Below are positions 5,825-23,553 of a DNA stretch of 33,817 nucleotides, piece after piece. The notes below the pieces were generated by a model. It did no database searches and was not told the origin of the DNA. It was given only the letters and a program-made list of their open reading frames with translations. A program made the translations under genes and the position numbers. Each line of letters opens with the position of its first letter. The first letter of the stretch is position 1. Origin of the DNA: Salpingoeca rosetta (lineage: Eukaryota; Protista; Choanoflagellata); contig JAWQFM010000024.1 in NCBI GenBank assembly GCA_033442325.1, forward strand, positions 1,140,490 to 1,174,306. Direction: 5' to 3'.

Positions 5825-7325
5825 TCACACCATGCTTTCCTTGTCCGAGTCAAATCCGTCTGGAATCGTCTGCGATGATGCCGGCAGTTCGTCCGCCAGA
5901 TCGTCGTCGTCATCATCAAACTCGTCTCGCGCAACAATCGTTGGTTGGCTCACCATTGGCCGGAGCGTGTGCAGTCGCGCGCGCCGCTCAGCACCGCCAT
6001 CATTGTCGTCACGCGTGGAGTTGGCGCTGTGGGCTTGCGTGTCGTTGGGGTGCAAATTGCTGCTGCTGCTGCTGCTGTTGTTGTTGACGGTTTCTTCACT
6101 GTTGTCATCATCACCATCACCATCACCATCGCCATCACCATCACCATCACCGTGCTTGCGCCCGCTGTTCCTGCTCAAGTTCCGTGAGAGCCGGCCCGCG
6201 CCCGTGTTTGACCGCGTGCGTCCGAGCCGCCGCTTCGTCGACCGCTGCGACGGCGGCGGCGTTGTTGATCGCCCCGCATTCGGCACCTCATTCACGGGCG
6301 CCAGCTTTGTCGGCGACTCCTTCGTGACGCTGCTGCTGCTGCTGCTCTTGTCGCCGTACACCACCAGCTCGTCGTCGTCATCCCACAGCGAGGACCGCGT
6401 GCGAGACTCGCGTCTCGAATCGCTGCCGGAACTGAACGTCGAGTCCCGTCGGAAGTGCTGTGCGCGCGTCGTGTTCTGGCGCGGGGGCAGCACCCGCCGC
6501 CGCACGCTCGACCCGCTCCTGGGCCCACCGGTCCCGCTGCTGCTGGCACTGCTGGCCGGAGCGCTGCCCAGGTTCAGGTCATCGCTGCTGCCGCCGTTGG
6601 TGACAGTGGAGGGTGTCATCGTTCCCTTTCGTCCGCTGGCGGTGCGGGACACGGCGGCCTTTCCGCTGCTGCTCACGTCGCTCGCGCTGGCGGCTTTGAT
6701 CACGGCCGATGGCGTGGTTGCGCGGGGGCTGCGGCCGTGAAGAGAGCCCGGTGCAGTGCTGGGCACCACCAGCGTGGTGTGGGCGTGGGCATCGGCGAGG
6801 TGGTAGTCTGGCTCGATGAGCGATGCAGACTGGTCGAGCGAGTGCGCCTGCTTGAAGAAGCGTCGCCGCACAGACGCGTTGGCGGAGTCAGGCGCGTCTG
6901 ACCGCGGCATCTGGTGGCAGTGGTTATGATGATGACGATGATGGCAGTGTTGATGGTGGTGATGGCAGTGGTGGTGGTGGTGGTGGTGAGTTGCCATGCA
7001 AGGGAAAGGGCATTGCAAGGCGTGGGTTGGATAAACGGGTCAGGAAACAGCGAGCGAAAGGTGTGAGCAAGCTTAATGCGTGTAACATAACGTACGCTGT
7101 AGCTGGCGGTGGATGCGCTTGGGCTCTTGCCCTGGGGACGAATGCGCCGAGAGCGGATGGCAGCGCTGGGGGAGCTGGTTGATGTTTCGCAGGGCATGGA
7201 AGGGTGGAGGAAGAGGAGGAGGAGATGCTTGTTTAGTGGAGCGATGGCAAGCAAAAGAAGGCTCAAAGCATAGGCAGAAAGACACGCGCACAGAATACTG
7301 AAAAGACAGAAAAGCAGAAAAACTA

Positions 7326-7368
<43 letters not shown>

Positions 7369-8543
7369 CCAGCACGCGTGTTGTTACCGCATGGATCCCG
7401 AGCTTGAGCGATGGCTCCTGGCGCGCGCAATGGCCTCTGTTTGGCCAGAGAGCGCATCCATCAGCGCCACCTGGTATGCCTGCATGCCTGGTGGTGCAGG
7501 TTTTGGGTGCGTCAAGTGCAAAATGGTCCCAGATGCGAAACGCGGGTTGGTAACGTGGTACAGAATCAAGTGACACAACCGCCAGCAGCAGCAGTAGCAG
7601 TAGCAGCAGTAGCAAACAGCAGTGACAACGGCTACTCGAGCACGGCTGTCAACTCACGGTTCATGCTGTCAGCGAGGGCCTCGATTTTGTTGTTGACGCG
7701 ATCGTCCAAACTTCCGATTCGGTCCGTCTGCCGCTTCTCCATCGCCTGTACACATGCACGTGTGGTTGTGCTATGAGCGTGGTGGTGGTTGGTGTCGATG
7801 CAAACTAACGCAACTGCGACAGGCCGCGCACACAAGAAGAGCTTGGCAAAACTGCACATGCGTGCTCACATCAAAGTGGGTGATGATGTGCGCCTGCAGG
7901 CGGTCGAGCGTGTCGCGGGTGCGGCGCTCCAGCCCCATGTTCTCTGCACCACGGAAGGCGAAGAATTGTGTGTGAACGTGTGTATGCATGTGTTGGGTGT
8001 TTGTGTGTTGTGTGCGTTGTGTGCGTTGTGTGCATGTATGTGTGTTGTTTGTGTGTTGTTTGTGTGCGTGCATGTGTCTGCTAGGTGTGGATTGTACGTT
8101 GTACATGTGTGCATGTGTGGAGTAGTACATGTGCATGAATTCATCACCTGCGCGAATTGCCTGGACGGTTCCCTGCCACTCGTCAATGCCTTCGCGTTCA
8201 CCGAGCTCGCCGCCCTGAAACACACGAACGCGGACGTGGTGGTGGTGGCGGTGGTGAGAGGAGGCGAAGGAAGGGGGAAGCCACGTGCAATACAAAACTG
8301 TTTCAATGCAAATCACGTCATGGGCATTCCGTGCCGCACCTTGGGCGTGAGCATGTGGAGCCACCGAGGGAAGAAGGTCTTGTTGCTCAGCAACTCATCA
8401 CCCATGCTCAACTCAATCTCTGGCACGCGGGGAACAAGAGGCAAAGGCGTGAGGCAAAATTGTGGGCAGTCGAGACGGGCGAGGGTCAGAATTGGGATGA
8501 GACAAGCGGCTCTCTCAACAACGGAATATGCATGGCACACACG

Positions 8544-8618
<75 letters not shown>

Positions 8619-10663
8619 CTGTTGCACCTGCGATGATGCGCGCTTTCTCGAAAGGGAACGCGTCGCCTTCTTCGTCGTTGATCTTTTGCATGAAATCGTC
8701 CATCAAGTTGATCTGACCGGGAAGAGAGGGGGGGATGGGGCGAGATGAGGCAAGAAAAGGACGCATCTACACGACAAACAAACAAACACACACACACACA
8801 CACACATACACACACACGTGCAAAAGCGCACAGACATGCATATACACACACATACAAGCGCATGGACATGTATATACGAGCGCACCATGAGATTCAGCAT
8901 GAAGATGTTGATGCCAACCATGAAGACAACGAACAGAAGCTTTACAACGCCCGTCTGTCGAAAACAGAGCGACAATCACACGAGAGAGGACATGGAGCAG
9001 TGTGAGCAAGATCCGCAAGATCGCTGGCGTCAATTTACACACTCACGCACGCACACGTGCACATACGGAAACACACAGACACAATCACAAACACAGACAC
9101 TCAGACACAGACACACTCGTACACGCCCCCCCCCCTCTTTGCACGCACCACTGCGTCGTCTGGGGGCAGTCCCTCCTCCACGGTACCGTCGCCAAGGAGG
9201 AGCAGCTTGAAGGTCTTGAACACGGAGTCCATCACAGAGTCGTCAATCTGAAACAGCGCGTCCTCGGATGGAATCGTGCTGTTGAACCCATGATGTGAGG
9301 CCACGTGCAAACGACGCGAGGATGACAAACAGCAGTCAAGCGGTCGTGTGCGCAAGGGACGTGTGCGCAAGGGACGTGGGCGTGGTGAACAAGGCGTGGG
9401 TGAGAAGTTACGTTGGGGGATGCCTTTGTGTTTGTGGCGAATGGATGGCAGCCTTGCGTGGCAACGAGTACTTGCACACATGCCTGCATGTACGCAACCA
9501 TGCAATCGCGTGGGCACGTGTTTGTGGATGTTACCTGAAGAGGACATGGAAGCAGTTGGCTGTTCCGAGGAGAACAACGACGAGGATGAGGAGGAACGGG
9601 CCGGTGTAGTAGAAGATCTGGGAACGACCGGTGGGCGGGACAAGAAGTGAGACGCGTGGAAGAATAGAGGCCGGGGGTATGGAGATGAAGGTAGACGGGG
9701 GGGGGGAGCCAAAGATGATGACATGATGAGACGCACAGTACTTGCCACATAAAGCATAGTTCAAACAGACGTGTGTCACAAAACAAACAAACAACAAACA
9801 AACAAACAAACAAACAAACAGAGACAAACAGCAATGCGGGCACCTTAAAGACCATGCGGACAAGACCGCCGGTGAATTCAAACGCGCGGAGAAAATAGAG
9901 AATTTCGAGCCAGAGGAAGAACGACGCAGCAGACGTGACGGGGATGAACTGAAGCGAGGGGGGGGGGGGAATACGATGATGGGTACAAGGTTGAGGTGGG
10001 TGTGGTGAGTTGCGGAAGGGCGGGGAGTGGATGAGGGTGAACATCAGCAGAACGCAATCATGCAGCAAGACGTGGGCACACGCTGCTTCGTGTGTGTTCA
10101 GGCACACGACCTAAACCAAGCGGCACGTTGGGAGTTGACTATCACCACCAGCATCACCGGCCGCACCCAGCGAGAGCCGAAGAGGAAGAGGACAGCGGAG
10201 ATGAGGGCCAGGGTGGCGGTGCCGGATTGCAGGAGATTCCATCCGTCGAGCACAACAGCCTTCACCAGCTCCGTTGGGTTGGCGTGCGGTGACGTCAGCA
10301 TTGCGGAGCGCAGTGCTGCCTCATCGTCGTCATCGTCGTCGTCATCCTCATACCCAACGCTCCGGTCGTCAGCAGCAGTGCCTGCAGGCACGAAGCGGGC
10401 AGAGTGCATTGGCGGGATTGGGAGAGGGGGGAGGAGGGTGTAGGTGGTGTTGGTACATAATGACGGGCACGTGAATGGGTACACAGACAGCACGATGGTT
10501 TGTGGACACTCGAGTGCAGGGCAAGCGTCACATCCACCACCACCACGACGATGGGTCAGACCTGAGACAAGGCGGACGGCGGTGCTGCGAACGACTTGAC
10601 GGTACTCGTTCTTCAGCTGGCGATAGCAGAAGAACGGAATCACCAGCGCCAGCAGTACACTAC

Positions 10664-10757
<94 letters not shown>

Positions 10758-12916
10758 GCACGCACGCACAAAGAAACAACGTGAGTGTATGTGTTGGACA
10801 AGGTGCACTGTTCAGAGATGAGAGAGCAACAAGACAAAGAGAGGGAGTGGGAGAGAGTCGTGGGTTACCTGAAGACGGTAGTGGTGTCGGAGAAGATGGA
10901 GAGAACAGGAGAGGTCGACAGGTCGATCCGCGGTGCCGATAACGAGAACAGCGTGAATGTCACGAGAAATCCGCCAAAGATGCCCAGCTCCCTGCACACA
11001 CATAACGCAGCATATTCGTCACATCATGCGTGCGTGTGTGTGTTTGGGTCAAAATGAGCAGCGAGAGGCAGAGGGGTGCATAGGTGACAGGGGTGCACAG
11101 AGCAGCGAACACAGGACACAAGAACAGGAAACAACAATCATAGTAATAAAACAACAAAAGCAGCCGGTGTTGGTGGTGGTGACAGACCGCATGAAGAGGG
11201 AGCGTGCGTACGCCTGCCACTTGTAGTCCAACACCATCTTCAGCAGCGGATTGCCGAACAGCTGCAGCGGAGTACAATACCACACACAAGGAGCAAGCAC
11301 GTATGAGCAGTGAGAACATTGGTGGGCAAAGCAGCGTGCGCGCGCGCATGTGTGTAACAGAGAGTAAGAAGGACAGCGCGTGCATGTGGGACAGCGCGTG
11401 CATGTGTGTGTGTGTGTGCGTGTGCATGTGTGTGCATGTGTGTACCTGAGCGTTTCCTGTGCGCACGAATCTATGGAGAACGGTGTCCTTCAGACAGGAG
11501 ACGGGATCTGCCGAGGCCGATGTGCGGATCAGGCCGGCAAAGTTTGGGATGCTGATGGTGATGGTGGTGCATGGTTGATGTGTGGTTGATGGTGGCGAGG
11601 AGGAGGAGGGTGAGAAGCAATAGGTGTGAGCAACAGAAGGCTGATGGGGTGATGGGGTGATGGGAGCGTGTGCATGTGCATTGGTGGCGTGGCGTGATGA
11701 CGATGGAGGGAGGGCGCACCTCAGGTACTTGGCCTGAAACCGGACCACTTTGCCAACATCCTTCTCGCCCAAGCGATCTGTTGATGCACACGACGAGGTT
11801 GTTGGTGAAAGGTGCGGTGAATGAATCAAACAATTCCCATGAATGGACACATTCGCACACATGCACATACGCACACATGTACAATTACACTCATGCACAA
11901 TGAACAACAAGAGCACTGCCAGGCTGGCAGGTCGGCGAGAAGGTGTGCGTGCGTACCTTCTTCGTAGAGGTTGTTCCAGTGCGCCTCTGGCAGACGGATA
12001 GCCGACGGCATGATCACAGTCCGTGGCGATCGCAGGGACAGCTGGTCCCCCTTCAACTGTAACATCAGGACAACGAGAAGACGGGGGGGGGTAAGGTGTG
12101 TTGACATGTGTGCTCATGCGTGGACATGTCTCTCTCTCTCACACTCTCGCACGCGTGCATGTGTGTGAGCGCATGCATGATTGCAGCGTGTGCGCACCAC
12201 GCCTGGGGCGTCGTCGAGGCCAAACTGCTTGAGGAAGAGGGCGAGCAGGTCGTCCATCTCGTCCGCCAGCTGCAGCAGCGTGCGCAGGAACCGGTCCCGA
12301 CGCGACGGCACCCGGCTCAGCTGCCCGCTCTGCCCCGTGCACCGCGATTGCGGATGGCGGAGGTGGTGATGATGATGATGAGGTGGACATGGCGGCGCGA
12401 TGGTGGTGAGGAGAACGAACACAACAGAAGCACATGTGTGGAGATGTGTGTGCAAGTGGTTGTGAACGCGACCAAAGGCGCGTTGCGAGCATGGTGTGCT
12501 CACCTCCTTGGCGCTGATGATGCAGTCGAGAATCAACTTCACGCACGACCTGCAGAGAACGAGTTTGAGAGTGACGAATGCACGCGCGTGAGAGCCAACG
12601 CTTGAGGCACAACGTCGTGCATTGAATCAAACAGCGCATGCTATTACGCACAAACAATCACACACAAGCACCACAGTGCACGCGTACACACGAACACGCG
12701 CACATACAAACAGCCGCGTGCACACCTTGATTTGTTTGAAACGGCGAGGTGAAGGATGTCTGCACCGTCAGCGTTGACGGGGAGCCAAAACTCGGGCAAC
12801 TTGGCAGACAGCAGGATGTTGAGCAATGTGTCATTTTCTTGCATCACGGCATAGTGGCACAGCGTGTTCCCACGTCGATCCTCGCTGCACAAAACCGCAC
12901 ACGAACGTGTGTGCGT

Positions 12917-12973
<57 letters not shown>

Positions 12974-13271
12974 TGAGAATGTGTGTGGGTGAATGTGTAA
13001 GTTCATGTCTGTGTCTCTTCAGCAACGCTCCTCCCCAAAATAGACCGCCTGCGTGTCACTGCTGCGCACCTGTGCACGACGAGCGGGTATCGCTTGACGA
13101 CAGCAGACATCATGGTGTAGTCGCCGGTCGCCTTTGCCCGCTCAGCGATCATCTGCGCTTCTCGGAACAGCGGCTGCACACACACGCGCACGCACATGTG
13201 AGGTGATGTGTGCATGATGAAGGCGAGGTAAACAACAGCAGCAGGCGGGAATGCTGTACTGCACAGCAACG

Positions 13272-13302
<31 letters not shown>

Positions 13303-13723
13303 GCACGCACGCACGCGCGCGACAGATAAGCAGCGGCGCGTTCCTGCACGCCACCTGCTGGTTTGTGAAGCTGAGGTCGATGAAGCAGATGCGGCTGTCA
13401 CTGCAGCCCACGGCAATGAGCTGTCATCACACGTCGCGTTGCATCCAAGTAGTGCATGGACGGGTGAGCGTACACAGCAGGCACAGCAAACAAACGACAA
13501 GGGGAGGGACGGAGAGATAGAGAGAGAGTGTGTGTGGGTATGCGTGCAGCACTTGTGTGTGTGCAACATATGCACACATAACATGGTGCAAGCGACACGT
13601 CCTGCCTCCTCAGACCTGGGCGAATCGCGACTCCGTCGGCGCTGCGTCGACACAGAGAGCGCCCGACGGCAGCTCAACGAAACGCACATTCCGGTCCTCC
13701 ACGTTTTCGTCCACTGGTGATCG

Positions 13724-13758
<35 letters not shown>

Positions 13759-14470
13759 GCGAGGAGGAGGAGGAGGAGGAAGAGGAGGAGGAGGAGGAGG
13801 AGGAGGAGGAGGAGGAGGAGGAGGAGGAGGAGGAGGAGGAGAAATAACATGAGCAGGAGCTATAAACCGTGCGCGCGTGTGTGTGTGTGTGTGTCCGTGC
13901 ACTGACTTGGAATGACGCGGCAGGTGCCGTCAAGGGAAACAGAGACGACCTCATCCTTGGGAGTGAAGCAGACACCCTGACGACACAACAGTGGACAGTG
14001 CATGAGATCACGTGACTTCACGAGGACGAAAGTTCGCCTCCACTACCACCACCACCATCACCATCACCGCTGCTGCTGCTTCTGCCTTCAGAAGCACTGC
14101 AACAACACCAACACATCACACCCGAAACAACACCAACATACGACACGTGCGACCGCTGCCACAGTCACCAGCACATACACGATACCTTCACGTGGTCGAC
14201 GTGGCCGACCATCTTGGCGATGACCTGCCCCGTCTCCACATCGACGATGCGAACCGTCTTGTCACGCGACCCCGTGGCGAGATACGAGCTGTCCGCACTG
14301 AACCGCACAGAGTACACCTGCCACCAGCCGTCGTGGGGAGTTGAGGTTCGGGTGGAGGTTGACACGTAGGTGGTTCGTGCTGTGAGCATGTAATGCCGTA
14401 CAACAAGCGAAAAAAAAATGCTTCTTTGTAGCGACCCAGCAAATACACGGCATGCGCAAACAAAGCACAG

Positions 14471-14543
<73 letters not shown>

Positions 14544-14915
14544 CACACACACACACACATACACACACACACAAACACACACACACACGCACACACACAC
14601 ACACACGCGCACACACACACACACGCACACACACGCACACACACACACACACCCACACACACACACATACACACACACCTCCTTGTCGTGGCCTGTGACG
14701 ACAAAGCGGACCGCTTCCTCAACAATTCCGTCGTTCAAGTACTCGTTCACTGGTGGTGATGGTGGTGGTGGTGATGGTGGTGGTGGTGATGGTGTTAATG
14801 TGTCAAGAGGACACGCACTTCCATTACACTTGCAACAGATTGCGCCAACGCACAACCACACAAAGATTCACAACCACATCAAACACAACGAGAACATGAA
14901 ACACAACGAGCATGT

Positions 14916-14986
<71 letters not shown>

Positions 14987-15858
14987 CAAACACGTCAGTC
15001 GAACACGATCATGACCAGCCGCTGACCTGCGTCTGCGACGTCGAGAACAACGGTGCTCTTGTTGTGGCACGCCACCGCAATGAGCACAGACCCGTTGCGC
15101 ATTCCTGCCGATGCATCGCCGGCGTCGTCATCATCGTTGCCGGCGGGGCGGTCGCTGCTGTCGTTGGCGCTGGCAGCGTCTGCACCGTGGCGCTCGAGAA
15201 ACCCAAAGTCAATTGCACTCACGGGCGCATCGCACACTTGGTGGTGGCACACCTTGTGGTTTTTTTTTTTTGGGGGGGGGATGGAAGGGTTTGGTGTGTG
15301 CAACGAAGGGTGGGTGGGCAAATGTGAAATACAGCGATGAATGCTTCGGAGACATGCTCATGGATGGGCGCGCAGGAAGACAGTCACACATACAGACGCA
15401 CAGACACACACACACACACATGTAGACACACAGTAGACACACGTACACACACGCATGTAGACACACATACACACACACATGTAGACACACGTACACACAC
15501 ACATGTAGACACACATACACACAGACACACACGCACAGACACGCACACGGACAAACAGACACGCACACGGACAAACAGACGCACGAGGTTGTTTGTTTCG
15601 TCGAAGATGAAGAGGCAGCCCGCCACGTTTGCACACGCCAGCCAGCGCCCACAGGCCGATAGTGCCGTGCATGTCAAGGGCGTCTGGCGCGTGGTTGAGA
15701 ATGGCCATGGTTACATTGTGACGTGAGAACCACAATGATGGGCGTGGGGCAAGAAACCGTGTGATATGTAACCCTTTCTCAAATGCTTCTCCTGCTTCTT
15801 CACAAGCACACATGTGTACACACACACACACGTGGACACATACACACACACACACATA

Positions 15859-15891
<33 letters not shown>

Positions 15892-17324
15892 CACCGCCAT
15901 CACCACATATCAATCACGACCACCACCAGTGGCGCACCTTGCTGACGTGCACGGTGGCGACCTCGTCGTTCGGGTTGGCGGAGTCGAAGACGACGAGAGA
16001 GCCGTCCTCAGATGCAGAAGCAACGTGGCCCGATGGCGCCGTTGCAATGCTGCTCACGGGTTTGGTGTGCAGCCGCAGCACAGCCTCCTCCTGCACAGGC
16101 CGACAGTTGTTGGCACACGTGGATGGCACACGGCAGGGGAGAGACAGGTTGCATGGTGTGTTGTGTGAGAGAGTGTGTGTGCGTGTGCGTGTAGGAGAGC
16201 GAGTGAATGTGCAAGTGTGACTATGAGTGTGTGACGCCGTGGAGGTGTGCAGGGTGCGAGGTATTGTCTCAAAAGTGCGGCTGCGTAAAAGAGCCCCCTT
16301 GCCCATTTTCCCTCCTCCATTCGCCCCTTGGCTAAGCGCTTGATGATACGAGTAGCAGAAGTAGCAGCGCACCTGGAAGGTGGTGATGTCATGCATGGAC
16401 ACGACGCCGTTCTTGCCGCCCGAGAACATCTTCTCGCCATCCTTGCTGAAGCAGAGCGCCGTCACGGGCGACGTCAACTTCATCGTCATCAGCATGTCCG
16501 AGCTCCGGTCGTGGAAGATGTTGAAGATGTTCAGATGCAGCACAGGGCCTGATATGTGGGTGGAGGGGTGTGGATGTCAGCGACAACAACACAAAACAAA
16601 ACGTATGCACACTCGCACGCACACACATGTGCACACACACACACACATGTGCACACACACACACACACGCACGCACGCACGCACGCACACACGCATGTGC
16701 ATAGAGGTGTTCACTGCACATACAGGTTGCTCACAACATCAATACTCCATCCCCTCCTCCGTCTTCCTCATCACAATCCCCCACACGCCCAACGCACCGC
16801 TGGACTTGTCCTGGGCTGCGGTGACAAACTGGTACCCGTCTGTGGACTGCGCCATCATCACTGTCCATCCAATCCGCCGAATTGGCAGCAGCGGCTGGCC
16901 GGTCGCGACATCATAAAAATACAGCTGCCCGTCCTTGCCGCCAGTGAGGATTCGACGCCCATCTGGGACGTAATGGGGATGTGTAAGGGAGGGTGAGAGG
17001 GAGTGAGCGGGAAGGGGAGGGGGGGAGGGAGCGGGAGGGAGGGTGAGAGAGAGAGAGAGACGGTCGAATGCAGTGGGTGGTGATGTACAGGGATGCGCAT
17101 GAGGGAGGAGAAGGGTTGCCAGTTGCATTGACATTGATGGCGACAAAGGAGGAGCAATGAAACTTGACACGAAGACGAACATCATGGGTTGTGCACCTGG
17201 CGTGAACATGACGGCGCGCACGTAGTCCTTGTGGCCCTCGAGCGTTTGCTTCACCCGCTGGAGCTTCAGATCAATCAGCACCGTCTGCGCATTCAAACAC
17301 ACAACCAGAGGGGCACACGTGAGA

Positions 17325-17404
<80 letters not shown>

Positions 17405-18094
17405 CTGTGTGTGTGTGTATCGTACGAGTCGACTCTGCCATCTTTGCCTTCATGTTGCAGGCGTGCATGCGTGCATTTGACTCGCCTTGTTGTTGTCTGC
17501 GCCGACAGCGAGGCGAGAGCCGTCTGGCGAAAACACAACGGCGTAGCAGCGCCCCTCCTGTGATTCATATCCACATGTCCACGCGCATGGGTGAGACGAT
17601 GGTGCAGTGCATCGGAAACATCCACGACGGGCATTGTGGCCGCGACGTGTGCGACCAACAACATGATATCATGGTGTGGTGCTCGCGCTGGACTCACGGC
17701 GTTGTGTTCGAGTTCCAATGAGGGGTCCGAGCGGGAGAGGTCAAACACGCGCGCGTGCTTGTCTTTGCTGCCCGTGACAAGGAAGCGGCCTGCAGTGGGT
17801 TGCACACAGCAGAAGCAGACAGTGAAGGCGAGCAGTGGGTTGCACACAGCAGAAGCAGACAGTGAAGGCGAGCAGCGAGGAGAACACGTGAGAGGACACG
17901 CAGCGCGCACGCGTGTACGGGAACAGCAGGTGTGCTCACCTGTGGGGTGAAAGTCCATGCCGACGATGATGTCGTGATGGAAGTTTGCGATGCGGTGAAC
18001 CAGCACCCCAGTTCGCACATCATACACCCTGGCGGAGTGTGTTTTGGGGGTTGGGGGATGGGAAGGTGGGTGATGATGAGTTGTGAGTGGTGAC

Positions 18095-18125
<31 letters not shown>

Positions 18126-18142
18126 AGCGTGTGTGTGTGTGT

Positions 18143-18205
<63 letters not shown>

Positions 18206-18582
18206 GAGGGTGGGGATGGAAAGGACAGGGAGTTGTGACTTGTGAGAGGAAGAGGGACAAATGAACGCGTGTTGCCCATCAACATGTGTGCGTGTGTGCC
18301 GCCGCTCGATACATGTGCGCGCGTGCAACGGACCTTGCGACGCGGTCTTCGCCACCCGCGGCGACGAGAGCGTCATCACGCGACCAGACGATGACGCGCA
18401 GCGTGCACTTCTTTCCTTCCATCAACGGCACCACTGAATTGCATGCATGCACGCAAGCACATGTTTTGTGAGTGGGTCAGCGGGCACGGAGTGAGGAGAT
18501 GAAGGGGGTGTAAAGGGGCGAGGGAAGGAAGATTGTTGTGGAGCGGGGGAGGAGGGAGTAGACACACAAGCAATCACACACA

Positions 18583-18632
<50 letters not shown>

Positions 18633-18763
18633 GCGCACCGTTGATGGAGAGCTTGGCGTCGAACCCGTTGAACTCAGCGCCGTGATCAAAGATGAGAAGC
18701 CGTTTCTTCGTCGTGTACACCGCAATCATGCTGTGGCGCGCAATGTGGTGATTGCGCGCGCGC

Positions 18764-18814
<51 letters not shown>

Positions 18815-20126
18815 CGTGTGTGTGTGTGTGCGTGTGTGTGTTGGGGATTGTGATCAAATGAAGGTCGTGGTGAGGAAGGCAATGACAGGAAGCAGGGAGA
18901 GAGAGACAGACAGACAGACACACAGACACACAGACAAACACACACACACACAGAGACAAACAGACAGACACACACAGGTACACAGACACACAGACAGAGA
19001 GACAAATAGACAGACACACAGACACACACACAGACACACAGACAGACATACAGACAAACACAGACACACAGACAGACACACAGACACATGACGAGAGTCA
19101 CGCACTTTGCGTGATGCGCGAATGCGGCGGATTTGATGATGGACGTCTCCACTGCTTCGATGAACGTGTCATATTGGATCTTTGACGTGCAGGCCGCCGT
19201 GAGAAGGCAGAGGTGAGTGAGCAAGGAAAGGGCGTGCACACATGACAGCAATCCAGCGAGCTGCTAAAACAGGAGGATTCGGCCTCACAGAACGCGACCA
19301 CACCCACACAACCAACTTCGGAAAGCCCAAGAACGCAGCACACGTGCAATGCGTGCAGTACACACACACACACACACACACAGACACACACAGACACACA
19401 TACACACAGACACAGACACACACACACACAGACACACACACAGACACACACACACACACAGACACACATACACACGCGCACGCACACACACACATACACA
19501 GACCACAGACACACATACACACATACACATACACACACACCTTGCCGGATCCTTTGTCAATGAGAATGATCTGGCCATCCTCGTGCAAGACGGCAATACC
19601 ACACACGTCACTGTCGAAGATGCGCACTGCCACAATGTTCTATCGAGAGTAGAGAAGAACATGACACCATGATAAGTGAGGGGTGGTGTCTCAACCAACC
19701 AGCGATTGATCAGAGGTAAGTTTGCAGTGCCAAGAATTCAGCTAACACAGCACTTGCAAGCATCACACACACGCATACACACATACACACGTACACACAC
19801 ATACACACACACGTACATACACACATACACACACCTTGGCTCTTGAGATAACTTGGCGGAACATGCGCCTGCGCCCAACGCTCTGGAAGGCTTCGGCCAC
19901 CTATGAATGCGATTGATCGATCATGTTGTTGTTGTCAGATGAGGTGAGCAGGTGCGATCGCCAGTCGCGCGATGAGAGCCGCGCAATCCAGCGCAGCAAC
20001 AGCCGCAGCAGCAGCAGCCGCAGCAGCAACAGGACGAACCTTGAACTTGTTGGCCGTCGAGATCCAGCGGCCCCGGCCTCCCGGTTTGTCACGACGGGAG
20101 GAGGAGGAGATGGATGAAGAGGACAT
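5825..20126 (-). CDS. WD40-repeat and ankyrin-repeat TRP-type 6TM cation channel (43 exons, about 1791 aa)
   Basis: Phase-consistent exons in transcript order: 20126-20040, 19900-19835, 19639-19541, 19179-19106, 18730-18639, 18433-18334, 18028-17940, 17789-17698, 17557-17486, 17284-17197, 16962-16798, 16548-16373, 16090-15938, 15683-15585, 15252-15027, 14749-14679, 14317-14186, 13976-13907, 13713-13616, 13420-13355, 13173-13070, 12884-12726, 12549-12504, 12329-12198, 12056-11957, 11777-11720, 11551-11446, 11261-11188, 10991-10869, 10659-10562, 10381-10167, 9948-9844, 9617-9535, 9278-9149, 8954-8886, 8712-8628, 8419-8340, 8214-8148, 7943-7870, 7745-7658, 7487-7388, 7174-7096, 6910-5825 (total 5376 nt). 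WD40 blades include [31 protein letters not shown] and [31 protein letters not shown]. Ankyrin motifs GNTLCHYAV and GADILHLAV. Pre-S1 LDYKWQAY, S3 DGWNLL, S4 and linker [21 protein letters not shown], pore [13 protein letters not shown]6 [18 protein letters not shown]-helix-like [10 protein letters not shown], then a coiled coil. Exons 1-2 and a few acceptors are less certain. Confidence 0.88.
13722..13841. repeat. (GAT)n-(GAG)n trinucleotide tract, intronic, next to the acceptor at 13714
   Basis: About 12 GAT followed by about 27 GAG/GAA; reads as a CTC/CAT pyrimidine-rich tract on the sense (-) strand. Confidence 0.9.
17792..17875. repeat. Exact 40-bp tandem duplication at an intron 3' end
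   Basis: gcagtgggttgcacacagcagaagcagacagtgaaggcga x2, abutting the acceptor at 17790-17791. Confidence 0.9.
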
Positions 20127-20932: not shown

Positions 20933-21336
20933 TCAAGACCATCCCTCGCTGTAGTTGTCATAGCTGTCGTCGTCATCATCGTCTGAGCTCACGGGGATCA
21001 AAAACGATGAGAGGGGTTGCACCGGTGCTCGCTCGTTGTCGGGTGTACGCCGGGGGCTGGCCTCCTGCTGGTGTCGCTCCTCATCGGCTCCCTCGTTGGC
21101 ATACGAGTAGTCGTTGTCTTCGTCGCGGTACGCAAACACAATGTCGTCGTCATCATCGTCGTCGTACGGAAGTGGTGGGGCCTGGTTGAAATCGTAATCA
21201 CTCGCGTCATCCTCGTCATCCTCGTCATCCTCGTCATCCTCGTCATCATCGTCGTCATCGTCGTCGTCATTCCAGTCAGCGCCCCAGCTAGACACGGGGT
21301 CTGTGCTACCCTCCTCCTCCTCGCCATCATCATCAC

Positions 21337-21374
<38 letters not shown>

Positions 21375-21754
21375 ACAACAACAACACTGGTGTGTTGCTC
21401 CAGTTCATCCTCCTTGTCATGCGCCTCATCATCGTCAGGCCCTCCGTTTGTGCCCAGTTCCCCGTACACGGCCTGCCACCGCTCCTGCGCCTCCTGCATG
21501 TGCTGGTGGAACTCGTCCTCCGGCTCCGGGTATCCGCGTGCCCGCGCCATCACGCCCATGCTCCCGTCCCACGCGTCTGCAGCGCGCTTCTTCTGCAGCA
21601 GCACCCGCTTCAGGTTCCTGCCATGCGTGTGCATGTGTGTGTGTGTGTGACGGACACAGATTGGCAAAGGTGTTCGCAAGAGGGCTAAACTACAAAGCAA
21701 ACCCGACACACACACACACGCACACACACACACACGCACACACACACACACACA

Positions 21755-21802
<48 letters not shown>

Positions 21803-23553
21803 ATCACGCACACACACACACACAAACACGCACACACACAAACACGCACACACACACACACAAACACGCACAAACACGCACACACACACAAACACGCACA
21901 CACACGCACACGCACAAACACGCACACACACACAAACACGCACACACACAAACACGCACACGCGCGCGCATACTCATAACACACAGCACACGCTTACAGG
22001 ATCTCTTGATGGCGCCTGATTTCGTCGCACTTCTCATCAATGGGCTTGCGACGGGCAAGGCCTGCCGCCTGTGTGTGCTCGGGCGTTTCCCACAGCACAA
22101 CTGCGCGCGGCACAAACGTCACGGAGCGGCTGCGCGGCACACCTTCCGAGGACGGTGCGGGCGACAGGCCCGGGTTGCTTGGCGCTCGGTCGAGCGTGGA
22201 CGACAGGCAGGGCTTGATGCGGGGCTCGGCCGAGTCGTCGTCCTCAATCACCGGCGGCGTGCACGGTTGCGGCACTGCACCATGCACAATGGCACGGGGG
22301 CAGCCACGGGCATTGGGTGTGCTGGCTGTGTCGAGGCAAGCTACAACACCGCCCTGCTCCTCTGCACCTGGATCGCCATCGTCATCAGCGTGTTCGGGTT
22401 CATGATGGTGGGCAGGCTGGCTGCTGACGGGAGAGACACCGGGTCTTGTTGTGTCGTCAGCAGGCAAGGCGGCGTTCTTGCTTGGGGGGATGATGGCGGC
22501 GCTGTCGGGAGCGTGGGGGTTCTTGTCGCCATGTGCGCTCTTGTGCCGTTGGTTCTCTCTGGTCCTGCTGTTCTTGCCCTTGTTCTTGCTCTTGTTCCTG
22601 TTCTTGTTCTTGCTCTGCTTCTTGTTGCTCTTCTTGGTGCTGGTGCTTGACGTGCCTGTTGCGGATGAGGCGTTCGCGGCGTCCGGTGGTGCATCGTGGC
22701 TGCTGTGTGGGTTGAACTGCACCTCGTCCGTGGACACAATGTCGCTGGACAGGGCGGGCAGCGCCGTGGCAGACAGGCACGCACCAATGAGGGCGCGATC
22801 GCTGTCGTCAAACTCGTCGTTGTCGAGGAGGAGGGAGCTGTGACGGGCGCTTAAGGGCGCACCAGCGTCCACACTGTCCACTTGCCTTGCCAGCCCATCC
22901 ACACGGCCTTGGACGTCCTCGTCGTCGCTGATGCCGTTGTGGTCGGTGTTGTCATGGTGGGTTCCTGCTGCGGCGTTTGGTGGTGGTGGTGGTGGTTGTG
23001 GCTGTTGTAGTTGTTGTGACAATTTGGCAACATCGGCAGCAACAACCGCGAACCCCTTTTCTTGCTGTTTTTGGTGGAGGGGTGTTTCCGCACCTTGCAG
23101 CCGAACGCTATTGCTGCTTCCTGTCCTGCTGCCCGTGCTGGTGGAAGGGGGCGAAGGCCCTCCGTCGCTGCTGCTGCTACCGCTACCGCTCTGGCTGCTT
23201 GCTGCGCGACTGCTGCAGGTGTCGTTGGTGTTATTGCTGCTGTTGCTGGCACTGAAACCGGCTTTCATGACTGCAGAGCGCTGAGGAGGAGGAGGAGGGG
23301 TTGAACCTTTCGCTTCAGCGAGGGGGCCTTGAGGTTCCATGGTGACGGCGGCTGAGGTGATGACGGCACGAAGATGTTGTTGTTGATGTTGATGATACAC
23401 GCGTTGTGATTGAGGAGCTGTGCTATCATTCTCAGCAAACCGCGGCTCAGCGAAAGATGGTGCTTCTTGCTGTTGATCTCGCTCGTGCTGCCACTGCTGC
23501 CGCTGGTCCTGCTGCTGGTCCTGCTGCTGCTGCACTCTGTTGTTGTCGTCCAT
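20933..23553 (-). CDS. Low-complexity acidic protein with RVxF PP1-docking motif and PPP1R15 (GADD34/CReP/DP71L)-like segment (2 exons, about 746 aa)
   Basis: Exon 1 is 23553-21998 (donor CT|GTAAGC) and exon 2 is 21617-20933 (acceptor ggcAG), joined in phase 2. The only ordered-looking part spans the junction: RSRSVTFVPRAVVLWETPEHTQAAGLARRKPIDEKCDEIRRHQEILNLKRVLLQKKR. The gene structure is fairly solid; the family call is tentative. Confidence 0.65.

Follow-up and report, generated by a model that had tools for sequence, protein, structure and literature searches.

TRP channels with N-terminal WD40 repeats are defined in the 2026 literature, two preprints of June and a PNAS paper of October, as TRPW, a clade of its own among TRP channels of group 1 that is absent from animals (2026 TRPW papers). 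TRPW1, the one member examined in depth, was solved by cryo-electron microscopy as a tetramer with a domain-swapped TRP transmembrane (TM) domain, a TRP helix, a resolved coiled coil and a 7-blade propeller, and the propeller was discussed by the authors, as a suggestion only, as a possible protein-interaction scaffold. TRPW1 is located at the flagellar tip and has a flagellar role, opens in response to a bacterial lipid or a synthetic agonist, carries currents that are blocked by ruthenium red, and gave the strongest response to bacterial extract among the TRPW genes tested (2026 TRPW papers). TRPW is a sensory-channel family that is older than animals and was lost in them, and one of its members senses bacterial lipids for choanoflagellates. 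Here we analysed a stretch of 33,817 nucleotides (nt) from the choanoflagellate Salpingoeca rosetta (the window; contig JAWQFM010000024.1), with positions numbered from its first letter. The minus strand, on which all features described below are located, carries at 5825-20126 a gene of 43 exons, PTSG_12745 (protein EGD77414), which is very probably an intact gene for a TRP-type cation channel of the TRPW family.

The analysis shows how the gene is built, which domains it encodes and that it is the same as a published entry. Short peptides of the TM exons were found verbatim in the supplements of bioRxiv 10.64898/2026.06.15.732144, both in EGD77414 (Data S1, S. rosetta TRPW set) and in the entry EP00044_Salpingoeca_rosetta_P003325, and the TM-domain sequence is identical to the TRPW domain published under these two names. 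The custom hidden Markov model (HMM) of that study assigned the latter entry to TRPW as best subfamily with a score of 203.5, aligned from residue 981 to residue 1253 (bioRxiv 10.64898/2026.06.15.732144). Our final gene model puts the S1 and post-S6 motifs at precisely these published positions, 981 and 1253. A stretch of about 980 residues therefore precedes S1 in the annotated protein too, and 980 residues is the combined length of all WD40 and ankyrin exons in the model. The gene is among the 17 that the same study assigns to TRPW in S. rosetta, and Data S4 equates EGD77414 with PTSG_12745. The companion feature table gives the PTSG_12745 row as WD40=1, Ion_trans=1, Ank=1 and 6 TM and classes it as TRPW by both network (SSN) and tree; no other TRPW row of S. 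rosetta in that table has Ank=1 (bioRxiv 10.64898/2026.06.15.732245; PNAS PMC13663828), and the other paper counts ankyrin repeats in 2 of the 17 genes (bioRxiv 10.64898/2026.06.15.732144). The original prediction, made from the letters alone, had proposed a TRP-type channel joined to WD40 propellers, gave TRPW as the probable name of such channels and supposed a lineage lost or rare in animals, all of which agrees with these publications. The TRPW family, its name, its absence from animals, and PTSG_12745 itself with its domain calls were all already published in 2026; what is added here is the position of each exon, a GC-AG intron and a total of about 14 blades, all three absent from the published tables for this gene, together with the ankyrin repeats of this paralog and the marine metagenome orthologs. 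The gene, its 43 exons and the family name were recoverable from raw sequence alone, and the locus adds no new kind of system.

PTSG_12745 shares with TRPW1 the N-terminal WD40 propeller and the group-1 TRP-like TM domain; to the TRP helix and C-terminal coiled coil of TRPW1 correspond a TRP-helix-like segment and a possible coiled coil in PTSG_12745. TRPW1 has one 7-blade propeller and no ankyrin repeats described, whereas PTSG_12745 has about twice the blades as well as ankyrin repeats. Animal TRPA, TRPV and TRPC channels resemble it in the layout of a six-TM cation channel, for which a tetramer is predicted in PTSG_12745, in having ankyrin repeats ahead of the TM domain and in a TRP-helix region; they are without a WD40 propeller, and published trees set TRPW apart as a separate group-1 clade. 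TRPA and TRPV channels are marked by an ankyrin N-terminus without other large domains, but in PTSG_12745 about 650 amino acids (aa) of WD40 sequence are located before the ankyrin repeats.

The gene model was built with a dynamic programme using codon usage and splice sites, trained on obvious coding cores and then refined by hand. The first model of 45 exons was rejected, as it included a poly-Leu exon and several tiny exons; retraining with GC donors allowed gave 42 exons, and manual reading gave the final 43. The minus strand contains many short stop-free pieces resembling WD40 blades, an ankyrin repeat and TRP-type TM helices, separated by microsatellite-rich spacers, and G+C varies from 51 to 66% across the region. 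The final model runs from an ATG at 20126 to a stop at 5825-5827 and encodes 1788 aa; its coding sequence of about 5.4 kb is divisible by three and has a single terminal stop and no internal one. The 42 introns are 124-375 nt long, with 41 GT donors, one GC donor and AG acceptors throughout. The exon count of 43 and both ends, 20126 and 5825, that had been proposed from the letters alone were obtained again by this model.

WD40 sequence was identified by Pfam on raw open reading frame (ORF) pieces and by a repeat HMM that we built from seven clear blades of the protein itself. PF00400 scored above its gathering cut-off (27) on the pieces at 15917-16576 (41.6 bits) and 14168-14734 (32.7 bits) and just under it on two more (26.1 and 21.9 bits). 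WD40 and propeller matches were found on the pieces at 17296-18372 and 16742-17449, many named propeller families were matched by the raw ORF pieces as well, and exons 14, 18 and 20 taken singly gave weak propeller matches. Pfam on the single N-terminal exons 3-7 gave no WD40 match. With a shuffle-based threshold, the self-built HMM recovered 10 repeats, three of them beyond the seven seed blades, of which four fall in blades 1-7 and six in blades 8-14. The regular spacing of about 43 aa gives about 14 blades over aa 52-705, which suggests two 7-blade propellers: a probable first one of blades 1-7 (16490-19639, exons 3 to part of 12, aa 52 to about 361) and a probable second one of blades 8-14 (13355-16489, part of exon 12 to exon 20, aa about 362-705). 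Within blade 11 there is an acidic insertion, about 35 aa long. The earlier reading of about 650 aa and roughly 14 blades in exons 3-20, spanning 13355-19639, stands with the Pfam matches, the 10 self-HMM repeats and the remainder by spacing; exon 3 of the model starts at 19639 and exon 20 ends at 13355.

The propellers are followed by a linker with two or three ankyrin repeats (exons 21-23, 12504-13173, aa 706-808). Exon 22 alone matched Ank_2 at E=6.8e-4 and 20.6 bits, under the cut-off of 27.3, and the published row has Ank=1. A helical linker and pre-S1 region (exons 24-28, 11188-12329) leads to the TM domain with S1-S6 and the pore loop (exons 29-35, 8886-10991, aa about 962-1240). Six hydropathy peaks are located at aa 956-1234 of model 3, corresponding to aa 962-1240 of the final model, with none elsewhere in the protein, and the TM domain contains a pore loop with a Gly-Asp motif. 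Of the TRPA/TRPV-like six-TM pore in the original prediction, the six hydropathy peaks and the pore-loop motif are seen here; the published trees place the protein in the TRPW clade and not with TRPA or TRPV. Pfam searches with single channel exons found no channel family; the published table has Ion_trans=1. Searched against PDB sequences, the S3-S4 exon had no matches above chance level, and the TRPW1 entries cited in the preprint were not among them; for the same exon the ESM Atlas offered no more than weak leads, at 0.75-0.79, to PKD_channel, Ion_trans and YVC1_C. A TRP-helix-like segment directly follows S6 (exon 36, 8628-8712). The region after it is conserved and leads to a possible C-terminal coiled coil (exons 40-41, 7388-7745), conserved in a marine relative described below, for which our own heptad count was indecisive. 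The disordered tail (exons 42-43, 5825-7165) is, by composition, 382 aa rich in Ser, Arg and Asp, as the claim of a long disordered tail had anticipated.

Comparisons with relatives were made for the channel half. A full-library protein search with the S3-S4 exon gave a single match, an ORF fragment of 200 aa (P0001) with 64% identity, which is encoded on contigs of marine metagenomes, Tara Oceans among them (L001-L004). All four contigs end upstream at exon 26, which limits the comparison to the channel half. On the Tara contig L001, exons 26-43 have colinear orthologs with 45-100% aa identity, which lends support to the exon limits modelled for the channel half. Conservation is highest in the pore, S6 and TRP-helix exons (76-100%), with exon 36 reaching 100% aa identity over 28 residues; exons 26-28 have 76-89% aa identity, and the tail is conserved only in patches. 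DNA similarity to L001 is restricted to exons, the other matches being microsatellites, and the introns are unconserved. The comparison shows purifying selection on the channel-half exons. Neither the ankyrin exon nor the S3-S4 exon had a match in scans of JGI metagenomes. Among cultured species, the TRP-helix-like motif recurs in orthologs of six other choanoflagellates (published FASTA, bioRxiv 10.64898/2026.06.15.732144), and the motifs of the S4-S5 linker, S6 and TRP helix hardly differ between PTSG_12745 and its choanoflagellate and Tara orthologs. The introns of the uncultured marine relative are similarly rich in microsatellites, and its exon order is the same.

Whether the WD40 and channel exons belong together was examined at their junction. 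The last WD40 exon ends at 13355 and the next exon begins at 13173, which leaves an intron of 181 nt and no gap of intergenic size. The introns around the WD40/ankyrin junction measure 195, 181 and 185 nt, like other introns, and the reading frame is continuous in the model from the WD40 exons through the channel exons. Proteins marked 'Complete' from transcriptomes of Microstomoeca roanoka and Choanoeca perplexa contain WD40, Ion_trans and Ank (published TRPW tables), and the M. roanoka ortholog has an N-terminal part of similar length, its TM domain lying at 958-1236 (bioRxiv 10.64898/2026.06.15.732144). All the indirect evidence, including the agreement with the published residue coordinates and the share of 31-mers given below, points to the WD40, ankyrin and channel exons being one gene. 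It is very improbable that two adjacent genes, one for a WD40 protein and one for an ankyrin-TRP channel, were wrongly joined by both the present model and the annotation: the junction introns leave no room for a terminator and a promoter, the frame is unbroken, the published coordinates demand about 980 aa before S1, the complete transcriptome proteins of relatives show the same order of WD40, Ank and Ion_trans, and the architecture of the family has been solved in TRPW1. The two-gene arrangement would nevertheless agree with junctions that are predicted from sequence and with word searches using the linker exon and the ankyrin exon, which returned no transcript-derived fragments.

The same 31-mer data and published measurements bear on whether the joined gene is in use. 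Of the 31-mers sampled from 5825-15800, a share of 0.31-0.37 is present in the likely RNA runs X4-X11, and the share expected with all model exons and nothing else is 0.313. PTSG_12745 also has a tested expression fold-change in Data S4 (bioRxiv 10.64898/2026.06.15.732144). That the locus is a decaying or unexpressed paralog, as might be supposed in an expanded and variable family (2026 TRPW papers), is hardly credible: besides the measured fold-change and an exon-sized word share that fits expression, a coding sequence of 5.4 kb has stayed free of internal stops, and its exons are conserved where its introns are not.

The main reading is an intact gene that joins propellers and channel, and the following points weigh against it in whole or in part. 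The splice junctions, including those between the WD40 and channel parts, are predictions from sequence, and the word searches with the linker and ankyrin exons are silent on transcripts, as noted above. The annotated protein was absent from the full-library protein search with the S3-S4 exon, which returned the metagenome fragment P0001 only. The model is least certain in exons 1-6, at the beginning of exon 15 (15252, with 15192 or 15217 as alternatives) and at the boundary of exons 11 and 12, and four of the about 14 blades, including blades 1, 2 and 7, come from spacing alone. Finally, channel activity of PTSG_12745 is a prediction by analogy with TRPW1, the only member for which tetrameric cation conduction is shown, and one of the 2026 TRPW papers cautions that conduction by TRPW proteins needs experimental confirmation.

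We infer the tetramerisation, ion conduction, stimulus and cellular site of the PTSG_12745 product; by analogy with TRPW1 it most likely forms a tetrameric channel for cations. A single chain of about 1790 aa would comprise about 14 WD40 blades, two or three ankyrin repeats and a six-helix, voltage-gated-like TM domain with a pore loop, continuing C-terminally into a TRP-helix-like segment, a probable coiled coil and a long disordered tail. Four such chains would most likely assemble, as in TRPW1, into a domain-swapped tetramer in which the S5-pore-S6 parts form the cation pore and the coiled coil helps assembly, while the cytoplasmic propellers and ankyrin repeats may dock partners. The gene might instead be intact and encode a subunit that does not conduct or that regulates, such as a scaffold or a heteromer partner, and not a channel able to open by itself. 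Most other TRPW paralogs in the supplement have an S6/TRP-helix motif unlike that of this orthogroup, conduction is unproven for most TRPW members by the authors' own caution, and the strongest response to bacterial extract was that of TRPW1; yet all six helices and the Gly-Asp motif of the pore loop are present, and the pore, S6 and TRP-helix exons are exactly those best conserved in the Tara relative, which makes a non-conducting product unlikely.

With PTSG_12745 taken as a channel, its place among the S. rosetta TRPW genes can be considered. In the cRFXa data set (Data S4) several TRPW genes have log2 fold changes of -1.7 to -3.2, whereas PTSG_12745 has +0.41. Because it does not drop there, the data set hints that PTSG_12745 is outside the RFX-dependent flagellar programme, and for the same reason its role may differ from that of the flagellar TRPW1. 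We tentatively raise the possibility, in which we have rather less than even confidence, that PTSG_12745 represents a distinct, slowly evolving TRPW subtype marked by its double propeller and ankyrin repeats and by an S4-S5 linker, S6 and TRP helix that hardly vary, conserved from craspedid to loricate choanoflagellates, present in open-ocean metagenomes and unlike TRPW1 in its role. If this were true, the subtype would not be one more copy of a fast-radiating family.

Several details of the exon-intron structure were read by hand. The 201 nt at 17285-17485, read directly from the sequence, form the GC-AG intron, whose donor is GCGAGT. It follows exon 9 (17557-17486, 72 nt), which has the only non-GT donor of PTSG_12745 and encodes a clean, frame-neutral WD40 strand pair; a gene finder limited to GT donors would skip this exon without a frame break. 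A symmetric exon of 99 nt (15683-15585), missed by the dynamic programme, codes for a WD40 blade and has a weak Pfam propeller match (E=0.0018). The acceptor of exon 6, at 18433, is a canonical CAG. The donor of exon 31 is located right after '...GSRW', as supported by the annotated sequence and by the Tara and M. roanoka orthologs. The dynamic programme had chosen an exon 31 longer by 21 nt, which was ruled out by the annotated sequence, the Tara contig and the M. roanoka ortholog (cDNA). A second in-frame GT donor does exist 21 nt downstream (10146-10166, minus strand), and its use would add 7 residues inside S4. The first two exons (19835-20126, aa 1-51) encode a Ser/Arg-rich leader of low confidence, called by the dynamic programme alone and without homology support.

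Nearly all introns contain long microsatellites of the (CA)n/(TG)n type, which read as Cys-Val or Thr-His runs in six-frame translation and give spurious blastn cross-matches. The stretch 15469-15528 is located in intron 14 (15584-15253) and is non-coding in the gene model, and Rfam gave no matches in the sequence on either side of it. The upstream neighbour, on the same strand and about 800 nt from the start codon, is an ORF whose product would be strongly acidic, with long Asp/Glu runs (20936-21973, minus strand).

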